Below are positions 8,399 through 59,259 of a DNA stretch of 64,000 nucleotides, piece by piece. This DNA comes from Bacillus subtilis subsp. subtilis str. 168 (lineage in GTDB: Bacteria > Bacillota > Bacilli > Bacillales > Bacillaceae): the NCBI RefSeq assembly GCF_000009045.1, contig NC_000964.3:3720001-3784000 (forward strand), in the 5' to 3' direction. Numbering within the stretch: the first letter of the stretch is position 1; each line of letters starts with the position of its first letter. The position numbers and the translations under genes are program-made. Below the pieces are notes generated by a model. It was not told where the DNA came from and did not search any database. It worked only from the letters and a program-made list of their open reading frames with translations.

Positions 8399-8510
8399 GG
8401 CGCTGAGCTTATTGTTCATGTTTATGTTCTTCATCTGGTCGGCCATGTCTGATTTTGTCATTTGGCTTCTATTATTCCCCCCTTCTGACCCTTTGGATCA
8501 AAAGCTTGTA

Positions 8511-9296: not shown

Positions 9297-9450
9297 CAGA
9301 TTCTCTCCTTTTCCGGCATCTCCAAGGTTTTATTTTCTGGTTTTCTTCTAATGTTTTTCAAACGAATGTTTAAAGAAGCCCTACTTCTGCATAATTTTCC
9401 AAACAATAGTTAAATAGTAGCAAATGTATTCAGCACCCCGCAATAGATGA

Positions 9451-9476
9451 AAAAAAGACTGGTGCGCAACCAGCCT
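9451..9476 (-). terminator. ugd terminator
   Basis: Minus strand AGGCTGGT-TGCGC-ACCAGTCT followed by a T-run. Confidence 0.65.
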
Positions 9477-9487
9477 TTCTTTTTCAT

Positions 9488-10810: not shown

Positions 10811-11004
10811 TGTTTCCCTCCAACAGTTAAATTGCTGCTTTGCAGCTTCCGTAATATCGTATGAGAACATCCTATCATGAATGCGAATGATCTCCCGCAT
10901 AGCCTGTCGGGTACAGCCTGTACAGATTTCTGAAATGTGATTCAACCATACAATACACTATTATATCGCTCTCAAAAAGAAAGTGGTGAAATGAGAATCG
11001 GCTG

Positions 11005-35860: not shown

Positions 35861-36043
35861 ACGTCTCCTCCTGATACTGTTAGTGTTTCTCACATTGCAT
35901 ATTTTACTCTTCACACTGCCTAAGTTCTTTTATGATGCTTGTGAAATTCTCAGAAGGAGCGTTTTCTCATGATTTTTCTTTTATGTAGTAGTAACAGGTT
36001 GTGCATACGAACAAACCGGCAAGCACTGTAATCATAAAGGGCG

Positions 36044-36687: not shown

Positions 36688-36704
36688 TGTCAGGAAATCT
36701 TACA
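36688..36704. promoter_or_regulatory. TnrA box of amtB-glnK (nrgAB)
   Basis: TGTCA-GGAAATC-TTACA matches TGTNA-N7-TNACA. Confidence 0.9.
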
Positions 36705-36789: not shown

Positions 36790-38004
36790 ATGCAAATGGG
36801 CGATACAGTTTTTATGTTCTTTTGCGCTTTACTCGTGTGGCTGATGACCCCGGGATTAGCGTTATTTTATGGAGGAATGGTAAAGAGCAAAAATGTGCTG
36901 AGCACTGCCATGCACAGTTTCTCTTCCATTGCCATCGTTTCCATCGTTTGGGTGCTGTTCGGATATACACTTGCCTTCGCACCAGGCAATTCAATCATCG
37001 GCGGGCTGGAGTGGGCAGGCCTCAAAGGGGTCGGATTTGATCCGGGAGATTACAGCGATACCATCCCCCACTCGTTATTTATGATGTTCCAAATGACGTT
37101 CGCCGTTCTGACTACAGCGATTATTTCCGGGGCTTTCGCAGAGCGGATGCGATTCGGCGCTTTTCTTTTATTCTCGGTTTTATGGGCCTCTTTGGTTTAC
37201 ACACCCGTAGCGCACTGGGTATGGGGCGGCGGCTGGATCGGCCAGCTTGGAGCGCTCGATTTCGCTGGCGGCAATGTTGTTCATATTTCCTCCGGGGTGG
37301 CAGGACTTGTTCTTGCCATTGTGCTCGGCAAACGGAAAGACGGTACAGCGTCTTCTCCGCATAACCTCATTTACACCTTCTTAGGAGGAGCTTTGATTTG
37401 GTTCGGCTGGTTCGGCTTTAACGTCGGCAGCGCATTGACCTTAGATGGTGTGGCCATGTACGCGTTCATCAACACAAACACCGCGGCTGCAGCCGGGATC
37501 GCCGGCTGGATCTTAGTAGAATGGATCATTAACAAAAAACCGACAATGCTCGGAGCGGTATCTGGGGCAATCGCCGGGCTTGTCGCCATTACGCCGGCTG
37601 CCGGATTTGTCACACCGTTCGCTTCCATTATTATCGGCATCATCGGCGGAGCTGTTTGTTTCTGGGGAGTATTCTCGCTTAAAAAGAAATTCGGATACGA
37701 CGACGCGCTTGACGCCTTTGGCCTGCACGGGATCGGCGGCACATGGGGCGGAATCGCAACAGGATTATTCGCAACAACCTCTGTTAACTCAGCGGGCGCA
37801 GATGGGTTATTTTACGGTGATGCAAGCTTAATCTGGAAACAAATCGTCGCCATCGCCGCCACTTATGTTTTTGTATTTATTGTCACTTTCGTTATTATTA
37901 AAATTGTAAGCCTCTTCCTTCCCCTTCGCGCAACTGAAGAAGAAGAGTCACTTGGGCTTGACTTAACGATGCACGGGGAAAAAGCATATCAAGATTCTAT
38001 GTGA
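36790..38004 (+). CDS. amtB: Ammonium transporter AmtB (NrgA)
   Basis: FQMTFA, DFAGGNVVH, WFGWFGFN and DDALDAFGLHG motifs. Confidence 0.97.
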   Translation: MQMGDTVFMFFCALLVWLMTPGLALFYGGMVKSKNVLSTAMHSFSSIAIVSIVWVLFGYTLAFAPGNSIIGGLEWAGLKGVGFDPGDYSDTIPHSLFMMFQMTFAVLTTAIISGAFAERMRFGAFLLFSVLWASLVYTPVAHWVWGGGWIGQLGALDFAGGNVVHISSGVAGLVLAIVLGKRKDGTASSPHNLIYTFLGGALIWFGWFGFNVGSALTLDGVAMYAFINTNTAAAAGIAGWILVEWIINKKPTMLGAVSGAIAGLVAITPAAGFVTPFASIIIGIIGGAVCFWGVFSLKKKFGYDDALDAFGLHGIGGTWGGIATGLFATTSVNSAGADGLFYGDASLIWKQIVAIAATYVFVFIVTFVIIKIVSLFLPLRATEEEESLGLDLTMHGEKAYQDSM

Positions 38005-38015
38005 GGAGTGACGCT

Positions 38016-38366
38016 ATGAGCGGTCAAATGTTCAAGGTAGAAATTGTAACGCGTCCGGCAAATTTTGAAAAGCTGAAGCAGGAACTCGGAAAAATCGGAG
38101 TGACCTCTCTGACTTTCTCCAATGTACACGGCTGCGGCCTTCAAAAAGCACATACGGAGCTCTATCGAGGGGTAAAAATAGAAAGCAATGTATACGAGCG
38201 TTTAAAAATAGAAATTGTGGTCAGCAAGGTTCCTGTTGATCAAGTGACAGAGACCGCTAAAAGGGTGCTGAAAACGGGATCACCAGGTGACGGTAAAATA
38301 TTTGTCTATGAAATCAGCAATACGATCAACATCCGCACAGGCGAAGAAGGACCTGAAGCACTTTAA
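38016..38366 (+). CDS. glnK: PII protein GlnK (NrgB)
   Basis: GCGLQK..TELYRG and TGSPGDGKIFV; start at 38016 (116 aa). Confidence 0.96.
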   Translation: MSGQMFKVEIVTRPANFEKLKQELGKIGVTSLTFSNVHGCGLQKAHTELYRGVKIESNVYERLKIEIVVSKVPVDQVTETAKRVLKTGSPGDGKIFVYEISNTINIRTGEEGPEAL

Positions 38367-42663: not shown

Positions 42664-44112
42664 GTGAGTATTTCTTCCATCCTTTTATCACTTTTTTTCA
42701 TTTTAAATATTCTTTTGGCCATCATTGTCATCTTCAAAGAACGGCGCGATGCCAGTGCATCTTGGGCGTGGCTGCTTGTTCTTTTCTTTATTCCCGTTTT
42801 AGGCTTTATTTTATACTTATTATTCGGCCATAATCTCAGACGCAAGCATTTGTTTCAATGGGAAGACCGGAAAAAGATTGGAATTGAAAGGCTGCTGAAG
42901 CATCAGCTTGAAGATTTAGAAACCAAGCAATTTCAGTTTAACAACCGGGCAACCTTTGATAACAAAGATTTAATTTATATGCTGATTATGAATAACCATG
43001 CTGTGTTTACAGAGGATAATTCAGTTGACGTCATTACAGATGGACGGGATAAATTTCAGCGGCTGCTGAGTGACATTTCAAAGGCTAAGGATCATATCCA
43101 TTTACAGTATTATATTTATAAAGGCGATGAATTAGGCAAAAAATTGCGGGACGCTCTCATCCAAAAGGCGAAAGAAGGTGTTCAGGTCAGAGTGCTTTAT
43201 GATGAACTCGGGTCCAGAACGCTGAGAAAAAAGTTTTTTAAAGAGCTTCGCGAGGCTGGCGGGCATGTGGAGGTCTTTTTCCCGTCAAAGCTCAGGCCGA
43301 TTAACCTGCGGCTGAATTACCGGAACCATCGAAAGCTTGTGATCATAGACGGTATGACCGGTTATGTCGGAGGCTTTAACGTCGGAGATGAGTATCTAGG
43401 GCTTAATCCGAAATTCGGTTATTGGCGGGATACGCATATCCGGCTGCAAGGAACGGCCGTGCACGCCATCCAAACACGATTCATCCTTGACTGGAACCAA
43501 GCTTCTCATCACCATACGCTGACATATATTCCAAATCACTTTCCTGATTACGGCCCAAAAGGCAACGTCGGGATGCAGATTGTCACAAGCGGCCCTGATT
43601 CGGAATGGGAACAAATTAAAAATGGCTACATCAAAATGATTTCGAACGCCAAGCGTTCCATTTTGATACAAACACCTTATTTTATCCCAGATGCAAGCCT
43701 GCTGGATGCTTTAAGGATCGCTTGCCTTTCGGGCATTGACGTTAACATTATGATTCCGAACAAGCCCGATCACGCCTTTGTATACTGGGCGACACTTTCG
43801 TATATCGGCGATCTGCTGAAAGCCGGAGCCACTGTCTATATTTACGATAACGGCTTTATTCACGCGAAAACCATCGTGGTGGATGACGAAATCGCTTCAG
43901 TCGGCACAGCGAACATTGATGTCCGAAGCTTCAGGCTGAATTTTGAGGTTAATGCATTTATTTACGATATCACCATTGCTAAAAAACTGGTTTCAACTTT
44001 TAAAGAAGATTTGCTAGTATCCAGAAAATTCACCTATGAGGAGTATCTGCAGCGCCCGTTGTGGATTCGAATAAAAGAATCCGTCTCGCGGCTGTTGTCG
44101 CCGATCTTATAA
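42664..44112 (+). CDS. clsA: Cardiolipin synthase
   Basis: Two HKD motifs (NHRKLVIIDG, HAKTIVVDD); GTG start at 42664 (482 aa). Confidence 0.96.
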   Translation: MSISSILLSLFFILNILLAIIVIFKERRDASASWAWLLVLFFIPVLGFILYLLFGHNLRRKHLFQWEDRKKIGIERLLKHQLEDLETKQFQFNNRATFDNKDLIYMLIMNNHAVFTEDNSVDVITDGRDKFQRLLSDISKAKDHIHLQYYIYKGDELGKKLRDALIQKAKEGVQVRVLYDELGSRTLRKKFFKELREAGGHVEVFFPSKLRPINLRLNYRNHRKLVIIDGMTGYVGGFNVGDEYLGLNPKFGYWRDTHIRLQGTAVHAIQTRFILDWNQASHHHTLTYIPNHFPDYGPKGNVGMQIVTSGPDSEWEQIKNGYIKMISNAKRSILIQTPYFIPDASLLDALRIACLSGIDVNIMIPNKPDHAFVYWATLSYIGDLLKAGATVYIYDNGFIHAKTIVVDDEIASVGTANIDVRSFRLNFEVNAFIYDITIAKKLVSTFKEDLLVSRKFTYEEYLQRPLWIRIKESVSRLLSPIL

Positions 44113-44119
44113 GATGCGT

Positions 44120-44149
44120 AAACCCCCGGCCTTTACGGCCGGGGGTTTT
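44120..44149. terminator. Bidirectional terminator, clsA/mta
   Basis: AAACCCCCGGCC-TTTAC-GGCCGGGGGTTTT. Confidence 0.9.
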
Positions 44150-44906
44150 CCTGATGGTCACAGTAAATGATGATTGCCTCCCGCAAAAAAGCGGCAAGAC
44201 CTTCTCCATATTGATTGATTGAATCGGTAAATCGCTCGTCAGTGATATACACTTCCCCGAGTCCTCTGAAAATGTCGAGTGTGCAATCGTAATGATATTG
44301 GCAAATATGATCGCGAAATGCCCCCACAGCGGCCTGAATCTCTGCATCATCGGGCCCATGCTTCATTCGCGCCGCAATTCGTCTGTAAATCGAATCAAAT
44401 TCAGCCATGATCGTGCGCCAATCATCTGCCGAGTATGCAGATGTCCTTTTCTCTGTTTCTTCTGCGATTTCCTTTCCATACAGCTTTCTGACTTCATCAG
44501 CGTATGTCTGCTGGTGCTCTTCAATGTCTTTCATGCTTAATCCGGCAAATAAATCCCTCTTATTCATCGTTTCCCCTCCATCAACGGACAAAAGCGTCCT
44601 GTCAATTGTTTGAATCATCTCATCCATTCTTTGTTTTTTCTTCATCAATATCTCCTTTTGCGACTGAAGTGCCGCTTTCCGGTCAAAATTCGGATGATCC
44701 AGCATCTCTTTAATCTCATCCAGACGAAACCCGATTTCCTTGAAAAATAAAATCTGTTGCAGTCTTTCCAGGTCTGCGTCACTGTACAAACGATACCCAG
44801 CATCAGTAAGCGCTGAAGGATTCAGAAGCTCAATATTGTCATAGTGATGAAGCGTCCGAATGCTAACGCCTGATATCTCCGCCACTTGTTTAACTTGATA
44901 TTTCAT
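44133..44906 (-). CDS. mta: MerR-family multidrug activator Mta
   Basis: VAEISGVSIRTLHHYDNIELL...GYRLY plus TipAS-like C-terminus; start follows GGAGG. Confidence 0.95.
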   Translation of the reverse strand: MKYQVKQVAEISGVSIRTLHHYDNIELLNPSALTDAGYRLYSDADLERLQQILFFKEIGFRLDEIKEMLDHPNFDRKAALQSQKEILMKKKQRMDEMIQTIDRTLLSVDGGETMNKRDLFAGLSMKDIEEHQQTYADEVRKLYGKEIAEETEKRTSAYSADDWRTIMAEFDSIYRRIAARMKHGPDDAEIQAAVGAFRDHICQYHYDCTLDIFRGLGEVYITDERFTDSINQYGEGLAAFLREAIIIYCDHQENPRP

Positions 44907-44927
44907 ACATAACACCTCCTCTTTTTT

Positions 44928-44958
44928 ATCGTAAACAATCACGCAACGTTAGGGTCAA
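44928..44958 (-). promoter_or_regulatory. MerR-type 19-bp-spacer promoter/operator of mta
   Basis: Minus strand TTGACC-CTAACGTTGCGTGATTGTT(19 nt)-TACGAT. Confidence 0.85.
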
Positions 44959-45050
44959 TCCCCAAAATGTTATTTTCTATATACAAAACTTCTCACAAAT
45001 AGTGTATAAAAGAAAAGTGAGTATTTTTTTGTAAAGGGGAGCCAGTATAC

Positions 45051-45434
45051 ATGAATCCTGAAACAATGAACAAAACCCTCATCAGCATTTCGAAATGGGG
45101 AAAAGCTACAGGCATTTTATTTATTATTATGGGCGCAATTACCGCGCTTTCAGGCGCGTTCTTTTTTCTAATCGGTGCCGTGCCAGGCGTACTGCAAATT
45201 ATTTCCGGTATCTTTTTGATGAGGTCAGCTAGGGAAGCAGGCCAAATGGCTGAACACAATAGCGGACAGTCTGAAGACTTAATGCTGGAGAATTACGCGA
45301 AATTCGTAAAGATGCAAGGGATTTATTTGATCGTAAGCATTGCTGTATCCATTCTTGCGATTATCGCCTTCTTCATCTTTTTAATGCTTGGGATTGCTGA
45401 CGGCCTTTTCAGCGATACGTACAGCACTTATTAA
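45051..45434 (+). CDS. ywnC: Membrane protein (DUF5362-like), paralogue of YwnG
   Basis: KWGKATGIL, ISGIFLMRSA and MLENYAKFVKMQ. Confidence 0.82.
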   Translation: MNPETMNKTLISISKWGKATGILFIIMGAITALSGAFFFLIGAVPGVLQIISGIFLMRSAREAGQMAEHNSGQSEDLMLENYAKFVKMQGIYLIVSIAVSILAIIAFFIFLMLGIADGLFSDTYSTY

Positions 45435-45438
45435 TGAG

Positions 45439-45467
45439 AAAAACCCGGAGCTGGCTCCGGGTTTTTT
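45439..45467. terminator. Bidirectional terminator, ywnC/ywnB
   Basis: AAAAACCCGGAGC-TG-GCTCCGGGTTTTTT. Confidence 0.88.
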
Positions 45468-45468
45468 A

Positions 45469-46110
45469 TTATTCCGCTTCGCTTACCACTGTGAAGCGTT
45501 CATTTTTGTGTTCGGGATGTTCAAGCTCGTCCAACACGGCAATGGCATAATCTGCATAGCTGATATAGCTGTCTCCTTTTGCATTTACGATGACATTGTC
45601 TTTTCCTTTTTGGTAAGAGCCAGTCCGTTTTCCTGCTGGATCAAAAAATGCCGCAGGACTGAGGAACGTCCAGGAAATGGAGTCTGTCTGCTGCAAATCT
45701 TTCAGGTTCTCGCCTTGATTTGATGCAGTTGGCAAATATTCTTTCGGAAATTCCGGCGTATCCATTAAACGGGTTGTTTTGGCTTCATCAACAAACAGGC
45801 TTCCCGCTCCGCCAACAACAAGCAATCTTGTGTGCTTCGCGTCCTTTAAAATGCTGATGAGTGCTCTTCCTGCTTCAACATGAAGATGTTCTTGGCCGGG
45901 TGCTGCTCCAAAAGCGTTTACGACCGCGTCGAAAGGCTTGATGTCTTCCGCAGTCAGTTCAAACACATCTTTTTCCAAAATCGCTACGTCTTGCTCCTGC
46001 ACTTTTGAAGCGTTTCTGACGATGGCTGTCACTTCATGGCCTCTTTTTTTCGCTTCTTTCAAAATCTCGTTTCCCGCTTTCCCGCTTGCGCCTATAATAC
46101 CAATTTTCAT
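45469..46110 (-). CDS. ywnB: NAD(P)-binding Rossmann oxidoreductase
   Basis: MKIGIIGASGKAG, VVGGAGSL and WTFLSPA. Confidence 0.9.
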   Translation of the reverse strand: MKIGIIGASGKAGNEILKEAKKRGHEVTAIVRNASKVQEQDVAILEKDVFELTAEDIKPFDAVVNAFGAAPGQEHLHVEAGRALISILKDAKHTRLLVVGGAGSLFVDEAKTTRLMDTPEFPKEYLPTASNQGENLKDLQQTDSISWTFLSPAAFFDPAGKRTGSYQKGKDNVIVNAKGDSYISYADYAIAVLDELEHPEHKNERFTVVSEAE

Positions 46111-46129
46111 TTTTCATTTCCTCCTTATT

Positions 46130-46148
46130 TGTAACAATTTTAGTTACA
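46130..46148. promoter_or_regulatory. Candidate YwnA operator upstream of ywnB
   Basis: TGTAAC-AATTTTA-GTTACA. Confidence 0.7.
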
Positions 46149-46177
46149 TGTTAGCGGTGAGAAGTCATCCCTTTTGA

Positions 46178-46579
46178 TTAAAAGAGATGATTCATAACAT
46201 CTTTTAATGACTTGCTTGCCAGTTCATTTTCCATCGCTCTTTGCACACTTTCAAACGTTTCATCCAGAGCGTTCTGAATTTTTTTCCCTACCGGACATTT
46301 CGGATTCGGGTTTTCATGAACCGCAAAGAGTTCTTCTTGCTTTTGGACAGCCCGGTACACTTCTAAAAGAGAAATATCAGCAGGATCTTTTTTGAGGCTT
46401 GCACCCGGCACCCCGGCGCGTGATGTGAGAATATCAGCTTTTTTCAGCAGGCTGATCATTCTTCGCACAACTACCGGATTCGTGTTGACACTGTCTGCAA
46501 TGATTTCTGAAGATGTTTTTTCATCCATCGAGATGAGGGATAAAATATGAATGGCAACAGCAAGACGGCTGTTAATCAT
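46178..46579 (-). CDS. ywnA: Rrf2-family regulator
   Basis: SRLAVAIHIL, SVNTNPVVVRR and single-Cys HENPNPKCPVG. Confidence 0.92.
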   Translation of the reverse strand: MINSRLAVAIHILSLISMDEKTSSEIIADSVNTNPVVVRRMISLLKKADILTSRAGVPGASLKKDPADISLLEVYRAVQKQEELFAVHENPNPKCPVGKKIQNALDETFESVQRAMENELASKSLKDVMNHLF

Positions 46580-46595
46580 GTTTTTTCACCACCGT

Positions 46596-46614
46596 TGTAA
46601 CTATAATAGTTACA
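46596..46614. promoter_or_regulatory. Candidate YwnA operator upstream of ywnA
   Basis: Perfect 9-1-9 palindrome TGTAACTAT-A-ATAGTTACA. Confidence 0.75.
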
Positions 46615-46685
46615 TTTGATTCGTTTGTCAACATCTAATATACACTAAATACATGGGTTTTGTGCACCGTTTTTAGTCAATAGAA

Positions 46686-46706
46686 CGGCCGGATGCACTC
46701 CGGCCG
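46686..46706 (-). terminator. Stem-loop after ureC
   Basis: CGGCCGGA-TGCAC-TCCGGCCG. Confidence 0.6.
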
Positions 46707-46713
46707 CGTCTTA

Positions 46714-48423
46714 TCAAAATAAGAAATATCTTTGTCCAAGTGGGACATAATCGACAGGCTGGCAAGACAATTCCTCCCCGTCAGCAAAGACCTGATAGGT
46801 TTTTGGATCAATCTCAATCTTCGGCAAAGCCGAATTCAGCTTCATATCCAGCTTGCTCAGCTTTCTGATATTTTTGACTGGAGAAATCCTTTTTTCCAGC
46901 CCTAAGCTTTCCGCCACACCACGCTCTATGCTTGCCTGAGACATAAATGTAATCGAGGTTGAGCGGTTGGCTTTTCCGTAAGACGCATACATTTGGCGCA
47001 TGAAAACCGGTTCAGGAGTCGGGATGGACGCGTTCGGATCTCCCATTTGCGCACGTGCAATCATGCCGCCCTTTAAGACCAGTTCCGGTTTCACGCCGAA
47101 AAATACCGGGTCCCACAGAACGAGATCAGCAAGCTTCCCTTTTTCCACCGAGCCGACCTCATGGCTGAGCCCGTGCGTAATTGCCGGATTAATCGTGTAT
47201 TTGGCAATGTACCGTTTTGCGCGCACATTGTCATTCCCGTTTTCACCGGCAAGAGCGCCGCGCTGTTTTTTCATTTTATCGGCTACCTGCCATGTTCGGA
47301 TGATCACTTCACCGACCCGCCCCATCGCTTGGGAATCCGATGATGTCATGCTGATCGCACCTATATCATGGAGAATATCCTCCGCGGCAATCGTCGCCGC
47401 CCTGATTCTGGAATGGCTGAATGCCACATCTTCAGGCACTTTCGCATCTAAATGGTGGCAGACCATCATCATGTCAAGATGCTCATCCATCGTATTAACG
47501 GTATAAGGAATGGTTGGCGTTGTAGATGACGGCAGAATGTTCGCGTAAGAGGCGAGCTTCATAATATCCGGAGCGTGACCGCCGCCTGCCCCTTCAATGT
47601 GATAAGTATGAATAACCCGGTCCCCGATCGCGTCGAGCGTGTTTTCCAAAAAGCCCGCTTCGTTAATCGTATCGGTATGGATGGCAACTTGAATATCAGC
47701 CTCGTCCACGACTTCCATACACGTTTTAATGGCGCTTGGCGTCGTTCCCCAGTCTTCATGGAGCTTAAGACCGATGGCGCCTGCTTCCACCTGCTCGATC
47801 AGCGGCGCTTTATCGGATGCATTCCCTTTTCCTAAGAAGCCGACATTGATCGGAAACTCCTCGGCCGCTTCCAGCATCCTCGCCATATACCACGCCCCGG
47901 ACGTACATGTTGTCGCTTTGCTTCCTGTAGCGGGTCCTGTTCCGCCTCCCAAAAGGGTCGTCACACCTGAAGAAAGCGCAACTTCCATCTGCTGAGGACA
48001 AATAAAATGAATGTGCGTGTCCACTCCCCCGGCTGTTAAAATTTTGCCTTCACCGGAAATCACCTCTGTCCCCGCTCCGATGACCATGTGCGGATCGACT
48101 CCATCCATGATATCAGGATTTCCGCTTTTTCCGACACCGACAATCCGGCCGTCTTTCACACCGACATCCGCTTTGACAATGCCTGTGTAATCCAATAGCA
48201 CGACGTTGGTGATAACCAAATCCAAAGCGCCGTCCTTCCCTGTGATTCTGCCGTTTTGGCCCATGCCGTCTCGGATAGTTTTTCCGCCGCCAAAGATCAT
48301 TTCTTCACCGTATACTGTGAAATCCTTTTCGACTTCGATCCATAAATCCGTGTCGCCCAATCTGATTTTATCGCCCGTTGTCGGGCCAAACAGTTCCGCA
48401 TATTCCTCCCGTGACATTTTCAT
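46714..48423 (-). CDS. ureC: Urease alpha subunit
   Basis: [27 protein letters not shown] and SSDSQAMGR motifs. Confidence 0.98.
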
Positions 48424-48794
48424 CGGATTACACCCTCCATCCAGCCGGCTTGTTTTAAGTTGGCCAACGTTTTTTCTTTGCCGCGTTCATCGATAAACGT
48501 GTCGGCCATTCCGTTCAGCCCTCTAATTGTCTTGCGTCCTCTGATTTCCACTAGTGAGACCGTTTTCTGCTCTCCCGGCTCAAAACGGACCGACGTGCCT
48601 GATGGAACATCAAGACGCATGCCGATCGCCAGCTCACGGTCAAATAATAAAGCCCCGTTGGCCTCCGCAAAATGAAAATGCGAACCGACTTGAATGGAGC
48701 GTGATCCGGTGTTTTTTACCGTTACCTCCCGTATCTCACGGCCTTCATTAATCGTAATGGTTCCCTCAGCAATTTGAAATGCTCCCGGCTTCAT
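48420..48794 (-). CDS. ureB: Urease beta subunit
   Basis: [17 protein letters not shown] and GTSVRFEPG. Confidence 0.97.
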
Positions 48795-49108
48795 GACTTC
48801 ACCTCCGCAGAAATTGGCTGATGTACCGTAACAAGCTTTACACCATCCGGAAATGTGGCCTCCACCTGAATGCTGTCCAGCATCTCAGGCACACCCTCCA
48901 TCACATCTTTTTCCGTTAATACATGGCGGCCGGCTTCCATCAGCTCTGCTACTCCCTTCCCATCACGTGCGCCTTCCATAATAAAGCAGGTGATATAAGC
49001 AGCAGCCTCAGGATAGTTCAGCAGAACGCCCCGCGCCTTTCGCTGTTTGGCTAATTCCCCCGCTGCAAAAATGAGCAATTTCTCTTGTTCAACTGGTGTC
49101 AGTTTCAT
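48791..49108 (-). CDS. ureA: Urease gamma subunit
   Basis: [18 protein letters not shown] and [14 protein letters not shown]; start follows AAGGAGG. Confidence 0.97.
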
Positions 49109-49208
49109 CTGTAGTCCTCCTTCTTTTGTCATATAAAGCAGATGCGGCTACTACGAATTTGCGGAACAGTCAGGCGGGACATCACCTCCCTTTCTTCGAG
49201 AATGGGGG

Positions 49209-49638
49209 TCATACGGTAAGATGCCTTTCAAAGCGGCATGCCGTTTCTTCATCAGCCTTGCCATGGTCAACAACCGTTCCCCTGTCGATCACGGAAAGAT
49301 CAGATTAACGCGTTTTCCAGACTGCGCTCGACTAAGATAACAAATGTCTTTTTTTCTGGAAATTTCTATAATAACTTGTCTGACTAGTTCGACAATTAAA
49401 ATCTGAATTCCTTCCAATTGTTTATTAAGTAAAATATTTTTCAGATTTACCATCAGCGCTCTGGTGATTGCAAGCTGCTGCTGTTGACCGCCTTTTCGTT
49501 TTGAACAAACGTTTGATTAAAACAAATAGCCCCCTCTGTTTAGCCGGAGTCGGCCTAATACAGCGACAATCTGCCCCGGGCGAAGCTAAGGCTGTGCAAA
49601 ACCATCGATTGATCATAACCAGACGTTACATTCCTGAT
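49209..49638 (-). pseudogene. Fossil of a urea ABC transporter ATPase (UrtE/LivF-like), deleted and frameshifted
   Basis: Pieces in different frames: [17 protein letters not shown] (49585-49635), PGQIVAVLGR (49550-49579), GGQQQQLAITRALMVNLKNILLNKQLEGIQ (from 49492), VILVERSLE, and VIDRGTVVDHG...HLTV-stop (49209-49292). Confidence 0.82.
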
Positions 49639-49640
49639 GG

Positions 49641-49893
49641 CAGCCCGTTGTTTTGCTCCGCAACCGGAAGCATGGCATGGAGGCCAGTCTGAGGCGCCGA
49701 CCTCCACGATACCGAGAACCCGACTATTGCCATTAACTCCGCATCATGGACGGTCACTTCGCTGATCGCCACCGTTCCTCTTAATGAGTGAAGAATTCCG
49801 GCCTTCACTGAATCCCCGCTTGTGTCGATATCAACTGTTTTCTCGCACTCCCGTGGCTTCCGACACTTTCTTCGGTGCAGTACATTCCGTCAT
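49641..49893 (-). pseudogene. Fossil of a urea ABC transporter substrate-binding protein (UrtA), 5' pieces
   Basis: [32 protein letters not shown] (49725-49820); [13 protein letters not shown] in a shifted frame; [12 protein letters not shown] (49641-49676); RBS AAAGGGG before the ATG at 49893. Confidence 0.82.
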
Positions 49894-49924
49894 CAAAACC
49901 CCTTTGTTTGATTTCTTCAAATGA

Positions 49925-49941
49925 TGTTATAAAAGTTTACA
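49925..49941. promoter_or_regulatory. GlnR/TnrA box upstream of the urt fossil and ure operon
   Basis: TGTTA-TAAAAGT-TTACA matches TGTNA-N7-TNACA. Confidence 0.8.
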
Positions 49942-50058
49942 ACTTATGTCATCATTATATAGAAGAGGCCTATTAATTCAAAGAATATTTAAAAAATTTA
50001 GTTACCTTGACCAAATCAGCTTCTTTTTTTGTTATATTTATTCACATCAGAAAAAGCG

Positions 50059-50092
50059 AAAAAAAAGACAAGAAACATTTCGTTTCCTGCCT
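50059..50092 (-). terminator. csbD terminator
   Basis: Minus strand AGGCAGGAAAC-GAAAT-GTTTCTTGTCT followed by a T-run. Confidence 0.7.
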
Positions 50093-50103
50093 CTTCCGTA
50101 CGA

Positions 50104-50292
50104 TTAATCTTTATCTGAAAATTTATCCTTGGCTTTCCCGATATCCTTTTGGATTTCGCCTTTTGCCTTATCTTTTTTGCCTTCAGCCTGCATGTCCGTT
50201 CTGTCAGCCATATCTCCGACTTTATCCTTCACTTCTCCTTTGGCTTTATTGAAGCCGCCCTTCATTTTGTCTTTTACACTATCGTTACCCAT
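50104..50292 (-). CDS. csbD: General stress protein CsbD
   Basis: DKMKGGFNKAKGEVKDKVG...QAEGKKDKAKG. Confidence 0.95.
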   Translation of the reverse strand: MGNDSVKDKMKGGFNKAKGEVKDKVGDMADRTDMQAEGKKDKAKGEIQKDIGKAKDKFSDKD

Positions 50293-50330
50293 GTTAATTC
50301 TCCCCTCTCAATTATGTGTGTACTTGTTAA

Positions 50331-50355
50331 CTTCCCGATCTGAGAGGCAATAAAC
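50331..50355 (-). promoter_or_regulatory. SigB promoter of csbD
   Basis: Minus strand GTTTAT-N13-GGGAAG. Confidence 0.75.
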
Positions 50356-50364
50356 ATTCTAATG

Positions 50365-50844
50365 TTATTTATCGATTTCGTAGCGCTCTCCGTAACGGAG
50401 CACCTTGTATATCGCCAGCCCGTCTGATGACTTTTTCTCCGAATATCGGACCGGCAGCAGGGCAAAAAACACATAATACGTAGAAAAATAGACAAACTGA
50501 TAGAAAAACACATTCGGCTTTAATACACTGTGTATAATCAGCAGATTGATTGCAAAAATCGTGATGAGGTTAAACAAGCAGCCCCCTGCATACACGAGTG
50601 CATTTGAGAATCGATTGTCAATTTTCAACTCCCCGTACCGGCAAAAAGAATCGATAAAATAAATCGTTCTGAACCGTATGGGTCCAATTTTAAGCAGCGT
50701 TTTTCCCATGCCTATATCCAACGATCCCTTTCCGCCAAAAATAAAAGCCATAAAGCTGTGCCCTGAAACATGTATAATCTGTACAAGCGGCAGAACAATG
50801 AGGAAAGACCACAGAAACTTCACCATATCATTAAAACCAAACAT
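50365..50844 (-). CDS. ywmF: Membrane protein resembling M50 peptidases, with a degenerate zinc motif
   Basis: Start follows GAGGGGG (159 aa); IIHVSGH at the HExxH position; LLPV...SSDG at the NLxPxxxxDG position. Confidence 0.75.
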   Translation of the reverse strand: MFGFNDMVKFLWSFLIVLPLVQIIHVSGHSFMAFIFGGKGSLDIGMGKTLLKIGPIRFRTIYFIDSFCRYGELKIDNRFSNALVYAGGCLFNLITIFAINLLIIHSVLKPNVFFYQFVYFSTYYVFFALLPVRYSEKKSSDGLAIYKVLRYGERYEIDK

Positions 50845-50965
50845 TGAATTCCCCCTCACATGCATATCTGCATCCCAAAACGGCTTTTGTTCAAAAAACA
50901 GTGCTGTAGCGATTTTTCCTGTTCTCCCCGGAAATAAACGTTCCGATGCTCCCCTTTTTTTGCAT

Positions 50966-50996
50966 AAAAAAAAACCATCTGCCAGCAGATGGTTTT
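50966..50996 (-). terminator. rapB terminator
   Basis: AAAACCATCTGC-CA-GCAGATGGTTTT. Confidence 0.85.
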
Positions 50997-50999
50997 GTC

Positions 51000-52205
<1,206 letters not shown>

Positions 52206-52281
52206 TTACAATGATTCCTTCTTTATGCCTATCCTTATATATTTCGGTTTTTCTACGTATTTTTTGCACTCGGATTCTAAT

Positions 52282-52315
52282 AAAAAAGCTTACCGGACAG
52301 TGCCGATAAGCTTTT
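52282..52315 (-). terminator. moaA terminator
   Basis: AAAAGCTTA...TAAGCTTTT. Confidence 0.65.
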
Positions 52316-52324
52316 GACTTCAAA

Positions 52325-53350
52325 TTAACCGCCAATATAAGACATTTCCACTTTCTTTTTGCCAGATGCTTTTGATAGCGTACGATCGACTGAATACTGA
52401 TCGATCCGATTTTTCCATACTGTCCCGATCATTTCTGATAGTTCGTCATCACTTAATTCCTGGCGAACCGGAGCTCTGAGGTCAAATCCGCTTGAAGCGA
52501 ATAAGCAGGTAAACAGCTCTCCTCTCGCAGAAAGACGGGCTCTGTTGCAAGATCCGCAGAATGCATCAGATACAGATGATATGACGCCAATTTCTCCGGA
52601 GCCGTCCAAGTAGCGGAATCTGGAAGCCACTTCGCCTATATAATTAGGCGCTATCGGCTCAACCGGCATGTGTTTATTGATCAAATCTATGATTTCCGCC
52701 TTTGTCATGACGTCTTTCTTTTCCCATTGGTTGGTGTTGCCTACGTCCATAAATTCAATGAATCTCAGGATATGCCCTTTTTCTTTAAAATAACGGGCCA
52801 TAGGCAGTATATCTTTTTCATTGACGCCCTTTTGAACGACCATATTGATTTTAACACCGAGCCCCGCTTGCTTCGCCGCTTCAATGCCTTCCAGCACCTT
52901 GCTGACAGAAACACCGCGCCCGTTTATCTTCTTAAAACGCTCGTCTTCTAAAGAATCAAGGCTGATCGTAACCCTTTTCAGCCCAGCCTCCTTGAGCCTC
53001 TTAGCATAAACAGGCAGCAGTGATCCGTTTGTCGTCATCGCGATGTCACGAATACCCGGTATGCGGGCCAGTTTTTTGATTAATTCCGGCATATCCTTTC
53101 TCATGAGGGGCTCTCCGCCGGTCAAGCGGATTTTTTCAACGCCAAATCTTGTGACAAACAATGTCGCAAGCCGTTCCAGCTCCTCAAATGAAAGCAGCTC
53201 CTCTTTCTTTAAAAAAGGATAATCCGGGCCGAATAATTCGGCGGGCATACAGTACGTGCATCGGAAGTTGCAGCGGTCTGTAACAGAAATGCGAAGGTCT
53301 CTCAGCGGTCTGTTTCTTTTATCCAACATCTGACGCGACTCTGTAATCAT
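52325..53350 (-). CDS. moaA: GTP 3',8-cyclase MoaA (radical SAM)
   Basis: [25 protein letters not shown] and C-terminal MSYIGG. Confidence 0.96.
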
Positions 53351-53365
53351 AGCTACAGCCCCTTC

Positions 53366-54154
53366 CTACTCCCTGATTCTCTCAGGGTGTGTATATACAT
53401 TAAATGATCCGTTTCTGACAAATCCAATCGCTGTGATATTCAATTCTTCAGCCATTTGAATCGCAAGCTCCGTCGGGGCCGATTTGGAAATGACAATCGA
53501 CACGCCGATTTTGGCCGCTTTTAACAGGACCTCTGATGAGATTCTGCCGCTGAACACAATCAGTTTGTCGCGTACGGACATCCCGTTTAGAAGGCAGTGT
53601 CCGTATAGTTTATCAAGTGCGTTGTGCCGACCGATATCTGTGCGCATCAACAGAAGCTTCTCTGTGTCGCAAAGCGCCGCATTATGGACGCCTCCCGTAT
53701 CCTGAAACGTCCCGCTCCCTTGCTGCATGTCTTTCATAAGCGCCAGACATGCCTCAGGCGATATCTTGATTTGGCTGACAGCCGTCTTGGCTGTTTTGAC
53801 ATCCTGCTGAAAATAAAAATGACGGCCCTTTCCGCAGCATGAGCCGATCACCCGTTTCGTATAATCCTTTTGATCCAATGTCTCAGGGTGAACGAGGTCG
53901 ACATATACAAAACCGAGACTTTCATCTATTGTAAACCTTTTAATTTCTTTTTGAAATCGTATAACACCCTCTGATGCGAGAAATCCGATGACAAGCTCTT
54001 CGATATGCTCAGGCGTACAAACGAGCGTCACAAATTCACTGCCATTCAGTATCACTGTCAAAGGGAATTCCGTCACCATCCGGTCTTCTACTTTGCTTAT
54101 TTCCCCTTGTTCATAGCGCCATACATCCCTGACCGCAGTTACTTTATCGTTCAA
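53366..54154 (-). CDS. fdhD: Sulfur carrier FdhD
   Basis: GSCCGK, TGGVHNAAL, DIGRHNALDKL and SGRISSE; TTG start. Confidence 0.95.
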   Translation of the reverse strand: MNDKVTAVRDVWRYEQGEISKVEDRMVTEFPLTVILNGSEFVTLVCTPEHIEELVIGFLASEGVIRFQKEIKRFTIDESLGFVYVDLVHPETLDQKDYTKRVIGSCCGKGRHFYFQQDVKTAKTAVSQIKISPEACLALMKDMQQGSGTFQDTGGVHNAALCDTEKLLLMRTDIGRHNALDKLYGHCLLNGMSVRDKLIVFSGRISSEVLLKAAKIGVSIVISKSAPTELAIQMAEELNITAIGFVRNGSFNVYTHPERIRE

Positions 54155-54229
54155 TGTCTCTTCCCCTCCGCAATGTTCCTGCCTTTATATTTTTTCACAC
54201 TCCTCGGATTTTGTCGAATTCTGAGACAC

Positions 54230-54258
54230 AAAAAGAGCCCTCTATATAAAGGGCTTTT
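54230..54258 (-). terminator. Terminator between ywmE and fdhD
   Basis: Minus strand AGCCCT-TTATATAG-AGGGCT followed by CTTTTT. Confidence 0.6.
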
Positions 54259-54399
54259 ACAGGATGTGATGACGGCGGTGTTTAGGCAGGACGCCTAAGC
54301 ATTTAGCCGCCGTTCCTTTTATAACACGTGAGCACCAATGTGCATTGACAACGAACGCGGGGTTTGTCGACACGCTGAGACACCTCTGTATAAAGGACT

Positions 54400-54561
54400 C
54401 TATGTTTGATTATGCTGATTCTTTTTCAGAACCGTAAACAGCACAATAGCTGCGATCAAGGTGAGAATGCTGACAAAAAAGAAGGCTGCCAGTTTTAGAA
54501 GAACACCAAGCAATATAAATGCAACGGTGGCTATAAGAAAAATCATTCCGAATAATTTCAT
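54400..54561 (-). CDS. ywmE: 53-aa two-TM membrane protein
   Basis: Not in the ORF track. MKLFGMIFLIATVAFILLGVLLKLAAFFFVSILTLIAAIVLFTVLKKNQHNQT, with an AAAGGGG RBS. Confidence 0.85.
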   Translation of the reverse strand: MKLFGMIFLIATVAFILLGVLLKLAAFFFVSILTLIAAIVLFTVLKKNQHNQT

Positions 54562-54586
54562 ATGTTCAACCCCTTTTTAGGGTATC

Positions 54587-54611
54587 ATTCCCGCCCAAAC
54601 TGTTTTTAAAC
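54587..54611 (-). promoter_or_regulatory. SigB promoter of ywmE
   Basis: Minus strand GTTTAA-N13-GGGAAT, near consensus. Confidence 0.8.
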
Positions 54612-54615
54612 CAAT

Positions 54616-54640
54616 AAAAAAGGCGCCTGGGGGAGCGCCT
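54616..54640 (-). terminator. ywmD terminator
   Basis: Minus strand AGGCGC...GCGCCT followed by a T-run. Confidence 0.65.
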
Positions 54641-54654
54641 GATCTTTAGGTTCC

Positions 54655-55329
54655 TTACTCAGTAAATTTTTGTGCTTCTTTTTCCCAAGCCTGTTCGAAC
54701 TCATCCGCACTGTTCGCTGAAATATATTCTCCGCCGCCAGCGACAGCTGCTTGTTTCATCTCTTCATTACCCTTGACATCAAAGTTGAAGCCAATGATGT
54801 TTACAATCGTATCCACATTTGATGCACGGAGCTTTTCGATTTCCGCCGCAGGGTCTCCGCCGCACGTTTCTTCACCGTCAGTGATTAAATACACCACGTT
54901 TTTCCCGTCTGCGTCAAATGCTTCAAATTCTTTTCTTGTGTCTGCAAGTGCTTTGGCAATCGGTGTCCATCCAGTCGGCTTGAGCTCACTCAATGAATTG
55001 TCAAACAGAGACCCTTCATATGGATGAAGGCCGTAAATGGTTTCCGTCGTACTGCACGAAAGGGCTTTACCGGACAGTTTATTGTTCCCTGCATGCCCGA
55101 AAACGCGAAGCATAAGATTTGTATCCTTTGGAAGAAGTTCGGCAAAAGATTTTACTGATTTTTTGGCAATGTCTATTTTGCGCTCTCCTCCTGTTTTTTG
55201 AACCATGCTTCCGCTTCCGTCAAACAAAACAGCTACATTTGTATCAGCCTGTTTCTCAGCGGCAAAAGACGGGGAGGCAATGGAAACAGTCAACAATCCA
55301 ATGATACCGGCAGCCAGCAATTTTTTCAT
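54655..55329 (-). CDS. ywmD: Secreted von Willebrand factor A domain protein
   Basis: Signal peptide (..SFA-AE); MIDAS DGSGS, GWTP and TDG; start follows AAAGGAAG. Confidence 0.88.
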   Translation of the reverse strand: MKKLLAAGIIGLLTVSIASPSFAAEKQADTNVAVLFDGSGSMVQKTGGERKIDIAKKSVKSFAELLPKDTNLMLRVFGHAGNNKLSGKALSCSTTETIYGLHPYEGSLFDNSLSELKPTGWTPIAKALADTRKEFEAFDADGKNVVYLITDGEETCGGDPAAEIEKLRASNVDTIVNIIGFNFDVKGNEEMKQAAVAGGGEYISANSADEFEQAWEKEAQKFTE

Positions 55330-55619
55330 ATGATTACTTCCTTTCTTTTTCATATTTTCCAACTATATGTTGGATTCTTCTTTATGCTAGAATACGAAAA
55401 TGCAAAAAGATATAGGACATGCTGCCTTTTGTGCTGCTTTCACGATCTGTCCAAAATCGCTTGAAATGCCGTTCATTTTTAGCCATTTCCGCCCAGAAAG
55501 CATAAACAGCTTGTGTGATCATTCATTCTTTTTTCGCCTTGATTATGACAGAAAAACGGAAATCTGCTACTATGCTACAGGCAGACAGCTAATTAGTTTT
55601 GAAGTTTTTGTTACATACA

Positions 55620-55651
55620 AAAAGAGGCTGACCATCACCAGCCTCTTTTTT
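55620..55651 (-). terminator. ywmC terminator
   Basis: AAAGAGGCTG-ACCATCAC-CAGCCTCTTT. Confidence 0.8.
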
Positions 55652-55652
55652 C

Positions 55653-56336
55653 TTATTTAGATAACATTAGTGATTGCTGAGTGAAAATTTTCTCAACATC
55701 TTTTTGGGTATAAGCCGGGAAGTATTCACCGCCGCCTACTTTCGCAATTGCGTTCAGCTGGCCTTTGTATCCCTCTTTATAATCAAAGCCGATCACATTA
55801 ACAGTGATATTGTCTTTTTGCAGTTCCTTTGCTGTTTTAATCGGGTTTCCTCCGCACGTTTCCTCACCGTCTGTCAACAGATACACCACTTTTTCCCCTT
55901 TTGCATCAAGCTGGTCAAAAGAAGATTTCGCCTCGTTCAGCGCTTTGGCAATTGGCGTCCAGCCAGTCGGCCCAATTGTATTGAGAGAATTGAGGAAGCT
56001 TTGCTCGTTAAAGCTTTGGAAGCCGTATACGTTGCGAATGGCTTCACATGACTGAACTTTTCCGGAATTTTTATTGTTTCCTTCAGAGCCAAACACGCTC
56101 ATTTTCACCTGAGTTCCTTCTGGCAATGAGCTCGCAAACTTTGAAATTTCTTTTTTGGCTGAATTAAATTTAGATACACCATCTATTCTTTTCGCCATAC
56201 TTCCGCTGGCATCAAGCAAGACCGCCACGTTCGCCGGCGCTTTAGCCTCCGTTTCTGTCTTTTCAGCTGCAAAAGCAGGTGAAGTTAATCCAAAAAGCAA
56301 TCCTGTCATCATGATCAGTGAAAATCTTTTCTTCAT
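55653..56336 (-). CDS. ywmC: Secreted von Willebrand factor A domain protein
   Basis: Signal peptide (..AFA-AE); MIDAS DASGS, GWTP and TDG. Confidence 0.88.
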   Translation of the reverse strand: MKKRFSLIMMTGLLFGLTSPAFAAEKTETEAKAPANVAVLLDASGSMAKRIDGVSKFNSAKKEISKFASSLPEGTQVKMSVFGSEGNNKNSGKVQSCEAIRNVYGFQSFNEQSFLNSLNTIGPTGWTPIAKALNEAKSSFDQLDAKGEKVVYLLTDGEETCGGNPIKTAKELQKDNITVNVIGFDYKEGYKGQLNAIAKVGGGEYFPAYTQKDVEKIFTQQSLMLSK

Positions 56337-56694
56337 GTTCGTACCCCTTTACCAATTTGTTTCTGCGTGCAGATGTTCAACGCTGAACATAATCTATCGT
56401 AATCAACAAAAACCGAGAAATAAATAGGGCGGGCTTCCCCATTGCTGTTGTTTACTTTTGCATAGAAACCTATGTTTTTATTAGTGATTTCCACCTAACG
56501 CCCCTATGAAAAGAGAAGATTGTCCGCCTTTCGGCTTTCGTTATATGAGTCTGTCGAAGTCTGTCGACAAATGTGGATGACTTTACCACAATCTCAAAGC
56601 CTGAAATCAGGAAAAAAGGACTGATCCTTAAAGACGGTCAGAAGCTCCTCTAAACCGTTTCAGCTACTCTTAGATAAAAGATATTCAGGAACAG

Positions 56695-56721
56695 AAAAAG
56701 ACGCCCAATGAGCGTCTTTTT
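56695..56721 (-). terminator. spoIID terminator
   Basis: AAAAAGACGC-CCAATGA-GCGTCTTTTT. Confidence 0.8.
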
Positions 56722-57753
56722 CTACTTTTTCGCCATATATTTATTCAAAAACGCATCTGCCTCAGAAATTTGTGTGCCTTGGTAATAGTACTTTACAATG
56801 TCATCAACCGTTTTGCCTTCTTTGGCCATAAAATTCGCTCCGTATTGGCTCATCCCCACACCGTGGCCAAATCCTCTCGTCGTGACTGTAATTGTGTCTC
56901 CATTTCGCTTCCATTCAAAATCGGCGGAGTTGAGACCCAACTTTTCACGTATGTCTCTTCCTTTCAGCGTCTTGCCGTTAATGACGGCAGTTGCGACCTG
57001 GTGGCCCGGTGTCTCGCCGGTAATCTTCCCTACTGCGCTAGATCCATCCAGCTTGACGCCAAGCTTTTGCTGAAATTCTGCCGCTGTAAAGGTTTTCGTT
57101 GCCTTATATTTCGGAGACTTTTTATCCCATGGGCTTTTGACGCTTTTTAAATATGGGATAGCACTTGTCCAATAAGCTTCTGCATTCTCTGTGTAGCCGT
57201 TGCTTGTGGAGAAAAAGGATGCTTCAATCGGCTGGTTGTTGTACGTTAAGATTTTGCCTTGCGTACTGGCTACCGCATCTGTGATTTTCTTCAGTTTTGT
57301 CTCATAGCTTGTGCCCCACTGTTTTTTCAGCTCCGCTTTGCTTTTATACACCTGGAACATCTGTGTATCATCCACCAGTGAGCCTTTAGGAGCTTCTACC
57401 GCTGAATTTGACACCATCAGTCTGACAATAAATGTTCTGGCGGCAAGCGCCTGGGCTTTCAGCGCTTCAGGTTTAAAGGTTGCCGGCATTTCGGAGGCGA
57501 CGACTCCAATCACATACTCTTCAAGCGGAATGTTTTCTACGGATTGATTTGCGGTTCGATAGACGGGAATAGAAACAGGTGATGCTTTCAATGTTTCTGC
57601 TCCTTTCGATGCTGGTTTCGTGCTGACTGCTGTCTTTTCTGATTCTACGCTGGCCCCCGCTTCCTTATTATGCTGGAATGGTATAACCAAGAGTGTGGGA
57701 ACCAAGAGAATCAATGCACATAGTACGGATAGTGTGATTGCGAATTGTTTCAT
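56722..57753 (-). CDS. spoIID: Engulfment lytic transglycosylase SpoIID
   Basis: LEEYVIGVVASEMP, EALKAQALAART, FFSTSNG and GFGHGVGMSQYGA motifs. Confidence 0.97.
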   Translation of the reverse strand: MKQFAITLSVLCALILLVPTLLVIPFQHNKEAGASVESEKTAVSTKPASKGAETLKASPVSIPVYRTANQSVENIPLEEYVIGVVASEMPATFKPEALKAQALAARTFIVRLMVSNSAVEAPKGSLVDDTQMFQVYKSKAELKKQWGTSYETKLKKITDAVASTQGKILTYNNQPIEASFFSTSNGYTENAEAYWTSAIPYLKSVKSPWDKKSPKYKATKTFTAAEFQQKLGVKLDGSSAVGKITGETPGHQVATAVINGKTLKGRDIREKLGLNSADFEWKRNGDTITVTTRGFGHGVGMSQYGANFMAKEGKTVDDIVKYYYQGTQISEADAFLNKYMAKK

Positions 57754-57790
57754 ATTCAGCTGCCTCCTGCTCGGGATTCGACTCTAGTCT

Positions 57791-57819
57791 AGTCTATGGG
57801 CAGGGACAAGCTAATATGA
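57791..57819 (-). promoter_or_regulatory. SigE promoter of spoIID
   Basis: Minus strand TCATATT-N14-CATAGACT. Confidence 0.85.
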
Positions 57820-57904
57820 CTCTCGTTTTGGACAGAAACTTTATTTGTCATTTACGTATTCTTTTTTGCTATTTTGCGCATAATGATGATAATACACAAA
57901 AAAT

Positions 57905-57939
57905 AAAAAACCAGTATGCCAGAGTGACATACTGATTTT
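57905..57939 (-). terminator. murAA terminator
   Basis: CAGTATG/CATACTG stem with flanking A and T runs. Confidence 0.65.
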
Positions 57940-57948
57940 CAAGTAAGT

Positions 57949-59259
57949 TTATGCATTTAAGTCAGAAACGACTTCTTTATTCTCTTGCTCAGAAGCAGAC
58001 TCATCATTTACACGTTCGATGTCTGCGCCCAGAGCGGCAAGCTTCTGATGGAAATCAACGTAACCGCGGTCTAAGTGCTTCAATTCAGTAACACGTGTGT
58101 GACCTTCAGCCACTAACCCCGCAAGAATCAGCGCTGCACCTGCACGCAAATCAGTCGCTGCAACTTCAGCTCCCTGAAGCTGTACAGGACCGTTAATGAT
58201 GACAGAACGTCCTTCAATCTTGATATCACCATTCATACGGCGGAATTCTTCCGCATGCATAAAACGGTTTTCAAAAACGGTTTCTGTAATCATGCTTGTG
58301 CCGCTTGCACGAAGCAGAAGCGCCATCATTTGTGACTGCATATCAGTCGGGAAGCCCGGGTGAGGCATTGTTTTGATGTCAATCGGTTTAAGCTCTTTCG
58401 GGCCGATGACACGCAGACCTTCACCTTCATCCTTAATTGTTACACCCATCTCTTCCATTTTTGCAATTAAAGAGGTGAGGTGCTCAGGAACCGCTCCTTT
58501 TACTAATACGTTTCCTTCAGTGATTGCAGCAGCAACCATAAATGTGCCCGCTTCAATACGGTCAGGAATAATATGGTGTTTTACGCCGTGAAGCTTTTCG
58601 ACTCCTTCAATTTTGATGGTGCCGGTGCCAGCTCCGCGGATTTTTCCGCCCATGCCGTTGATATAGTTTGCTAAATCAACGATTTCGGGTTCTTTTGCCA
58701 CGTTTTCCAGCGTTGTTGTTCCTTCAGCTAGAGCGGCTGCCATAATCAGGTTCTCTGTAGCTCCTACACTTGGGAAGTCCAGATAAATTTTTGCGCCTTG
58801 CAGTCGGCCTTTTACTTCAGCTTCAATGAAGCCATTACCGACTTTGATTTCTGCGCCCATTGCTTCAAAACCTTTTAAATGCTGATCAATCGGTCTGGAA
58901 CCAATTGCGCATCCGCCCGGAAGTGCAACTCTTGCATGACCTGTACGCGCAAGAAGCGGCCCCATGACAAGCACAGACGCACGCATTTTACGAACATATT
59001 CAAAAGGTGCTTCAGTTTGCAAAGCGTATGAAGCATTTACAGTCACTTCATTATTTTCAAAATGCACATCTGCTCCTAAATGACGCAACACTTCGTTAAT
59101 TGTATATACATCGGAGAGCGTAGGTACATCACAAATTACGCTTTTTTCTTCACTTGCTAATAAAGATGCAGCGATAACAGGTAAAACGGCATTTTTAGCG
59201 CCTTCAACTTTGACTGTGCCGTTTAACTTCTGACCGCCGCGGACGATGATTTTTTCCAA
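57949..59259 (-). CDS. murAA: UDP-N-acetylglucosamine enolpyruvyl transferase
   Basis: [26 protein letters not shown] and DLRAGAAL motifs. Confidence 0.97.

Follow-up and report, generated by a model that had tools for sequence, protein, structure and literature searches.

[quoted passage not shown]

The high-affinity urea ABC transporter UrtABCDE has been described in cyanobacteria and in Corynebacterium glutamicum (PMC8600894), and NCBIfam models exist for all five components (UrtABCDE: TIGR03407/03409/03408/03411/03410). The urease operon ureABC of Bacillus subtilis has a published control region with promoters P1, P2 and P3 and the regulators GlnR, TnrA, PucR and CodY (Wray 1997 and Brandenburg 2002, as cited in the passages of PMC4475385 and PMC5569456 that concern ure). 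Those passages take the long leader as given, name its first ORF ywzF, and offer no reading of it as decayed urt genes. In the literature searched, with the original ure papers (Wray 1997, Cruz-Ramos 1997, Brandenburg 2002) outside its scope, no description of the leader as a decayed urt operon was found.

The window analysed here (the whole 64,000-nucleotide stretch from B. subtilis subsp. subtilis str. 168) contains ureABC and its upstream neighbour csbD, separated by a gap of about 1 kb that holds no long ORF. Over ureC and over the csbD-ureA spacer the window matches two deposited B. subtilis genomes (L081, L086) at 100% identity, which marks it as a 168-like B. subtilis. We assign a probability of about 93% to the reading that positions 49209-49908 are the dead remnant of a urtABCDE operon that formerly lay directly upstream of ureABC.

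Intact operons at the same locus in relatives

UreA served as the anchor for comparison: 10 kb on either side of ureA was fetched from species-representative genomes, and an exact UreA look-up added further loci. A survey of the B. subtilis group for less decayed alleles had been proposed as a check, and it turned up intact operons in four sister species and in some B. subtilis strains. The sister species with a complete urtABCDE between csbD and ureA are B. tequilensis (L001), B. halotolerans (L002), B. spizizenii (L083) and B. inaquosorum (L087, L089), where the species names of L083, L087 and L089 are those carried by their deposited UrtA proteins. L001 and L002 show five co-oriented genes of 418, 300, 356, 249 and 233 codons on the way from csbD to ureA. 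The flanking genes moaA, a rap phosphatase gene, a ywmF-like gene and csbD are common to the window and the intact loci. For one intact operon (L091, positions 7001-11696 of that locus) all five products exceed the curated NCBIfam equivalog cut-offs, from UrtA (608 bits, cut-off 492.75) to UrtE (301 bits, cut-off 285.8). The original prediction had also held that urtABCDE often precedes urease genes, and the wider sample agrees: urtABC lies at most 10 kb from ureA in 18 of 80 diverse loci among the matches listed, so urt-ure linkage is common, and in 10 of those 18 loci (including the distant Bacillaceae member Aquibacillus) urt is upstream of ureA on the same strand.

The gene between rap and csbD (50365-51003, minus strand) is called as 212 aa in this genome, overlapping the end of rap, and as 159 aa in most other strains (compared with L082 and others); the 212-aa call probably starts too far upstream. 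Pfam has no match to the gene, and in one relative Peptidase_M50 matches weakly.

What is left of urtA and urtE

A blastn comparison with an intact locus gave six collinear blocks, from which global alignments yielded a base-level map (Table 1). The window is collinear with the 5' 430 nt of urtA and with urtE at 84-94% DNA identity, depending on the segment, and this similarity occurs at the same chromosomal position between like flanking genes (L001, L091), as orthology to UrtA and UrtE demands. A single deletion of 3,572 bp, with a 3-nt microhomology (TGC) at its junction, takes urtA codons 144-418, the whole of urtB, urtC and urtD, and urtE codons 1 and 2. The switch from UrtA to UrtE had been predicted at about 49640, and the junction maps to 49641/49640. 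Besides this deletion there are about 14 small indels of 1-202 bp, and the total shrinkage is from about 5,003 bp to 997 bp; the map is thus of the kind originally proposed, in which one large deletion removing urtBCD and many small ones reduced a multi-kb operon. A tblastn search of the window with the UrtB, UrtC and UrtD proteins of B. tequilensis found no trace of them.

Table 1. Coordinates of features of the ureABC upstream region (window positions unless a locus is named)
Feature	Position	Strand	Remarks
ureC	46714-48423	minus	downstream in the ureABC operon
ureB	48420-48794	minus	downstream in the ureABC operon
ureA	48791..49108	minus	first gene of ureABC
urtE-ureA intergenic spacer, with ureA RBS	49109..49208	minus	original 100-nt spacer, 93% identity to intact loci
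urtE remnant	49209..49640	minus	codons 3-233; alignment, HMM, tblastn
54-aa ORF	49453..49289	minus	deposited as 'hypothetical protein'
Candidate ure P2, sigma-H-like	49387..49412	minus	AGGAATT-N15-GAAC, read from sequence
60-aa ORF	49626..49808	minus	within the urtA remnant; deposited as 'transporter substrate-binding protein [Bacillus subtilis]'
Deletion junction	49640..49641	minus	urtA codon 143 (..NNGL) joined to urtE codon 3
urtA remnant	49641..49908	minus	codons ~3-143 of the 418-codon gene; alignment, HMM, tblastn
20-codon ORF	49831..49893	minus	opens at ATG 49893 (UrtA Met21, lipobox LMTGC)
Downstream GlnR/TnrA box	49925..49941	minus	TGTAAACTTTTATAACA; exact match to TGTNAN7TNACA
ure P3	49954..49981	minus	-35 TTGAAT (49981-49976), 16-nt spacer, -10 TATAAT (49959-49954)
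Upstream GlnR/TnrA box	50030..50046	minus	TGTGAATAAATATAACA; exact match to TGTNAN7TNACA
csbD	50292-50104		upstream neighbour of the ureABC region
B. atrophaeus urtE remnant	L003 9431-9851		upstream of ureA; urtE codons ~20-166, no urtA
B. nakamurai urtE remnant	L004 9816-9844		upstream of ureA; 30-bp shred only

The urtA part is 88-89% identical to L001 and L091 in global alignments, which place deletions of 39, 1, 1, 18, 1, 15 and 80 bp in it; two 1-bp deletions and those of 18, 15 and 80 bp break its frame. A further deletion of 16-24 bp took the urtA RBS and start codon and, together with the 39-bp deletion, removed the signal peptide; codons ~7-19 are gone, leaving a piece with no start codon, no lipoprotein signal peptide and no intact frame. 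The tblastn and alignment check suggested for UrtA and UrtE returned significant, collinear alignments. Residues 24-143 of B. tequilensis UrtA align to the window at E = 1e-17, and residues 19-143 are recovered in order. The NCBIfam UrtA model TIGR03407 matches at E = 7.3e-9 over profile positions 1-28 (35 bits, short of a full-length match above 492.75 bits), and Pfam Peripla_BP_5 reaches 23.2 bits on the urtA fragment, below its gathering score of 27. An RBS and ATG had been seen at 49893, and the letters are indeed there, but they do not mark the ancestral start: the ATG is the codon for Met21, and the AAAGGGG 6 nt upstream of it was created at a deletion scar.

In the urtE part, deletions of 7, 46, 202, 2 and 8 bp and a 2-bp insertion interrupt alignments to the intact genes at 86-94% identity, and the original TGA stop is kept (49211-49209). 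By tblastn, B. tequilensis UrtE is recovered in order over residues 3-70 and 136-233, and the urtE remnant has E values of 1.6e-28 and 5e-13. The piece running from GGQQQQ to EGIQ matches the NCBIfam UrtE model TIGR03410 at E = 1.8e-12 (47.2 bits, positions 133-186), seven orders of magnitude ahead of the next-best ABC ATPase model (E = 4.8e-5); a full-length TIGR03410 match above 285.8 bits is not reached, and ABC_tran has no Pfam match among the short fragments. Walker A (GRNGVGKST) went with the 46-bp deletion, the 202-bp deletion left only GGQQQQ of the ABC signature (LSGGQQQ), and in Walker B (LLDEP) the DEP has become NKQ. The NKQ codons AAT AAA CAA align to GAT GAA CCA, one substitution each, just as had been proposed before any intact gene was aligned. 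Every predicted UrtA and UrtE peptide block turns up when the minus strand is translated in three frames; the blocks keep the predicted order and are spread over all three frames.

The fossil had been described as not visible in the ORF track, yet annotation does not miss it entirely: two small ORFs within it are deposited as proteins, one of them as a transporter substrate-binding protein. The 60-aa ORF is probably ywzF, whose promoter has been placed on ure P3 (PMC4475385). For the cluster of the 54-aa ORF, one source calls a close variant an ABC-type branched-chain amino acid transport ATPase component. Judging by these automated names, individual pieces have already been noticed by software. 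The ORF lengths vary by strain (60, 70 or 87 aa for the one, 40 to 54 aa for the other) because of frameshifting indels.

Promoters and the leader

P3 is the best sigma-70-like site in the region, with 10 of 12 matches. From it, transcription should start near 49947, 839 nt ahead of the ureA ATG, and PMC4475385, where it quotes Wray 1997, gives the position of ure P3 as '839-bp upstream'. The GlnR/TnrA box previously proposed at 49925-49941 is an exact consensus match, one of 4 in 64 kb where 0.8 would be expected, and it is joined by an upstream box that the original prediction lacked. Two TnrA sites have been predicted in the P3 region (PMC4475385), and ChIP-chip has found both TnrA and GlnR bound there, in one study under the name 'ywzF promoter' (PMC4475385, PMC5569456). 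In an alignment of the window with four intact loci (L001, L002, L083, L091), the P3 hexamers and both boxes are kept in front of intact urtA, and this conservation extends to four species and to B. subtilis strains that have the intact allele. This argues for the earlier proposal that the distal nitrogen-regulated ure promoter is the old transporter promoter, and P3 is best read as the ancestral promoter of the urt operon.

The other two exact matches to the box in the window are at 36688-36704 and 35878-35894. One precedes, by about 90 bp, an ammonium transporter gene with a P-II gene after it (36790-38366; amtB-glnK type), and the remaining one stands at the 5' end of a divergent gene of the isochorismatase family, after which comes an MFS transporter gene (35914-33933; ywoCD-like). 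Both presumably belong to the known targets of TnrA. Directly after csbD there is a strong terminator-like hairpin (50061-50097, minus strand), which insulates P3 from upstream transcription.

The candidate P2 motif lies inside the urtE remnant and is built from the codons for EGIQ and for the IVEL after it in UrtE, the E-G-I codons making up its -35 element. The sigma-H promoter P2 of Wray's 1997 work reportedly starts 270 nt before ureA. Counted from the ureA ATG, that start is presumably position 49378, which puts the candidate motif 9-12 nt upstream of it. Every fossil allele has the motif, as does the intact urtE of L001 and L091-L096. P2 therefore probably originated as an internal promoter of urtE, and it may already have stood within the urtE codons before the operon died.

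A riboswitch, T-box, attenuator or other structured leader was considered and rejected. Rfam 15 has no family match on the leader (a search up to E = 1 gives just one chance hit of 16 bits, at 50062-50170 and so beyond the remnant), there is no terminator-like site between P3 and ureA, and the folding energy is ordinary (z = -1.68, with 3 of 20 shuffles folding as well).

Decay, alleles and rival explanations

Substitutions were polarised with five intact sequences, using an automatic alignment in which a few columns adjoining deletions are doubtful. Those on the window branch fall uniformly on codon positions 1/2/3 (18/21/15; chi-square p = 0.61), whereas the intact branch (B. tequilensis or B. 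halotolerans) has 8/2/33 (Fisher p = 1.9e-6 versus the window branch). Of the sites that do not vary among the intact genes, 8-10.6% have changed in the fossil of the window; in ureC the same measure is 2.3% over all sites and 15% at four-fold degenerate sites. The even spread over codon positions points to neutral decay, and constraint is relaxed relative to the intact orthologues, as is usual for a pseudogene. Selection on some sub-segment of the remnant was rejected, identities being flat across segments. Very roughly, the relic may have been drifting for at least half of the time since B. subtilis split from B. spizizenii and B. inaquosorum.

Seven B. subtilis fossil alleles were sampled, with ureC 98.3-100% identical to the window. 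The junction is identical in all seven, and ten other lesions are likewise common to them all. Polymorphism is seen in a 7-bp deletion, in the 32-bp extension of a 14-bp deletion, in an 8-bp deletion that is confined to the 168-type allele, and in a 4-bp insertion; since such small indels differ among strains, erosion continues.

Four further loci (L091, L092, L094, L095) carry an intact urtABCDE next to a ureC 98.4-98.6% identical to that of the window; in the three that include moaA (L091, L094, L095), moaA is 98.5-98.9% identical. Judged by these identities the four are B. subtilis proper. A sliding comparison gives the flanks of L091 and L094 98-99.6% identity to the window (44000-58000) and only 91-97% to L096, a relative of about 95% identity. 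The csbD-to-ureA tract between those flanks (about 5.5 kb) is 99.4-100% identical to L096, and 97.6% identical to B. spizizenii, closer than the flanks. On these comparisons the intact tract in B. subtilis-type strains is recombinant: either the fossil was overwritten by an imported intact operon, or lineages have swapped alleles of an old polymorphism. A broader version, in which the urt locus is a long-lived polymorphism of functional and fossil alleles and a dead operon can be restored whole by natural transformation through the csbD and ureA flanks, is offered tentatively, at somewhat less than even odds.

The operon has also been lost elsewhere in the group. In B. atrophaeus (L003) the loss is by another single deletion, equivalent to L001 5155 to 9258, and B. 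nakamurai keeps the merest piece of urtE (Table 1). A decay common to B. subtilis, B. atrophaeus and B. nakamurai was rejected, as the junctions differ. B. sonorensis and B. glycinifermentans have another upstream context at ureA. Given these differing junctions and contexts, the operon was lost at least two or three times.

An ordinary intergenic region resembling UrtA and UrtE by chance or through low complexity would fit with the fact that four of the six short fragments, too short to do so, have no HMM match on their own. The other two have specific and significant matches, and some 700 nt are collinear at 84-94% DNA identity with intact genes at the same locus, which makes chance a negligible explanation. 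It is also very improbable that the short ORFs (60-aa ywzF-like and 54-aa) encode functional small proteins derived from UrtA and UrtE. They are called and named as genes in many deposited genomes, and a plausible RBS-like sequence precedes the ATG at 49893; against this, frameshifting indels change their lengths from strain to strain, substitutions show no codon-position bias, and the signal peptide, Walker A and B and most of the binding fold are gone from the fragments. Pseudogene fragment is the annotation that these small ORFs should carry.

A less remote alternative, though still an unlikely one, is that the remnant has been exapted, that is, kept beyond neutral junk for urease regulation (P2, CodY sites, spacing or stability of the P3 transcript). 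All fossil alleles keep the sigma-H-like motif in the urtE remnant at about the published P2 distance, the remnant has never been wholly deleted despite its long age, and the leader has no internal terminator. Yet identity runs at 84-94% across segments with no island of conservation around the motif, the substitutions look neutral and the indels are polymorphic, and leader folding is unremarkable (z = -1.7). Moreover, B. atrophaeus and B. nakamurai keep ureABC after losing the -10 part of the motif or nearly all of urtE.

A neutrally decaying urt operon best accounts for the leader, very probably with the following history. The urtABCDE genes once stood directly upstream of ureABC and in the same orientation, and we infer that the two were co-transcribed from P3. 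In the lineage of most B. subtilis strains, the 168-like one of the window included, a 3.57-kb deletion fused the 5' third of urtA to urtE, and about 14 small indels and neutral substitutions eroded the remainder, a process still under way. The sigma-A promoter with its two GlnR/TnrA boxes survived as ure P3 because it still drives ureABC, and the fossil, with P3 still upstream of it, is transcribed as an 839-nt, essentially non-coding 5' leader. P2, of sigma-H type, would lie within the old urtE coding sequence, and the remnant, we infer, is now only a passive leader that also carries P2.

This history explains why the main nitrogen-regulated urease promoter sits 839 nt from ureA, behind a leader and an ORF (ywzF) with no known function. 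By implication, laboratory B. subtilis has lost a high-affinity system for urea uptake still present in natural isolates and sister species, which is relevant to growth on urea, to the engineering of urease-based biomineralisation, and to the reading of ChIP peaks 'at ywzF'. The locus also provides a natural series (intact, fossil, further-eroded, and independently lost) for the study of deletional decay and recombinational repair.

Compared with UrtABCDE systems as described, the remnant is orthologous by synteny and sequence to the urtA and urtE of sister Bacillus species, and the gene order, the link to ureABC and the nitrogen control of its operon are typical. It keeps about 15% of the operon, without the permeases or UrtD, and transport is impossible. 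The published ureABC control region is the same DNA as the remnant. Like other bacterial pseudogene relics, it combines frameshifts and neutral substitutions with one large internal deletion and many small ones, and its promoter has been captured by distal genes. The remnant is a clear case of something already known, the decay of an operon whose promoter is retained, and no new kind of element; what sets it apart from other such relics is that intact, fossil and independently decayed alleles occur here in one species complex, unusually well resolved, and that the organism is a model one and the regulatory region a textbook one.
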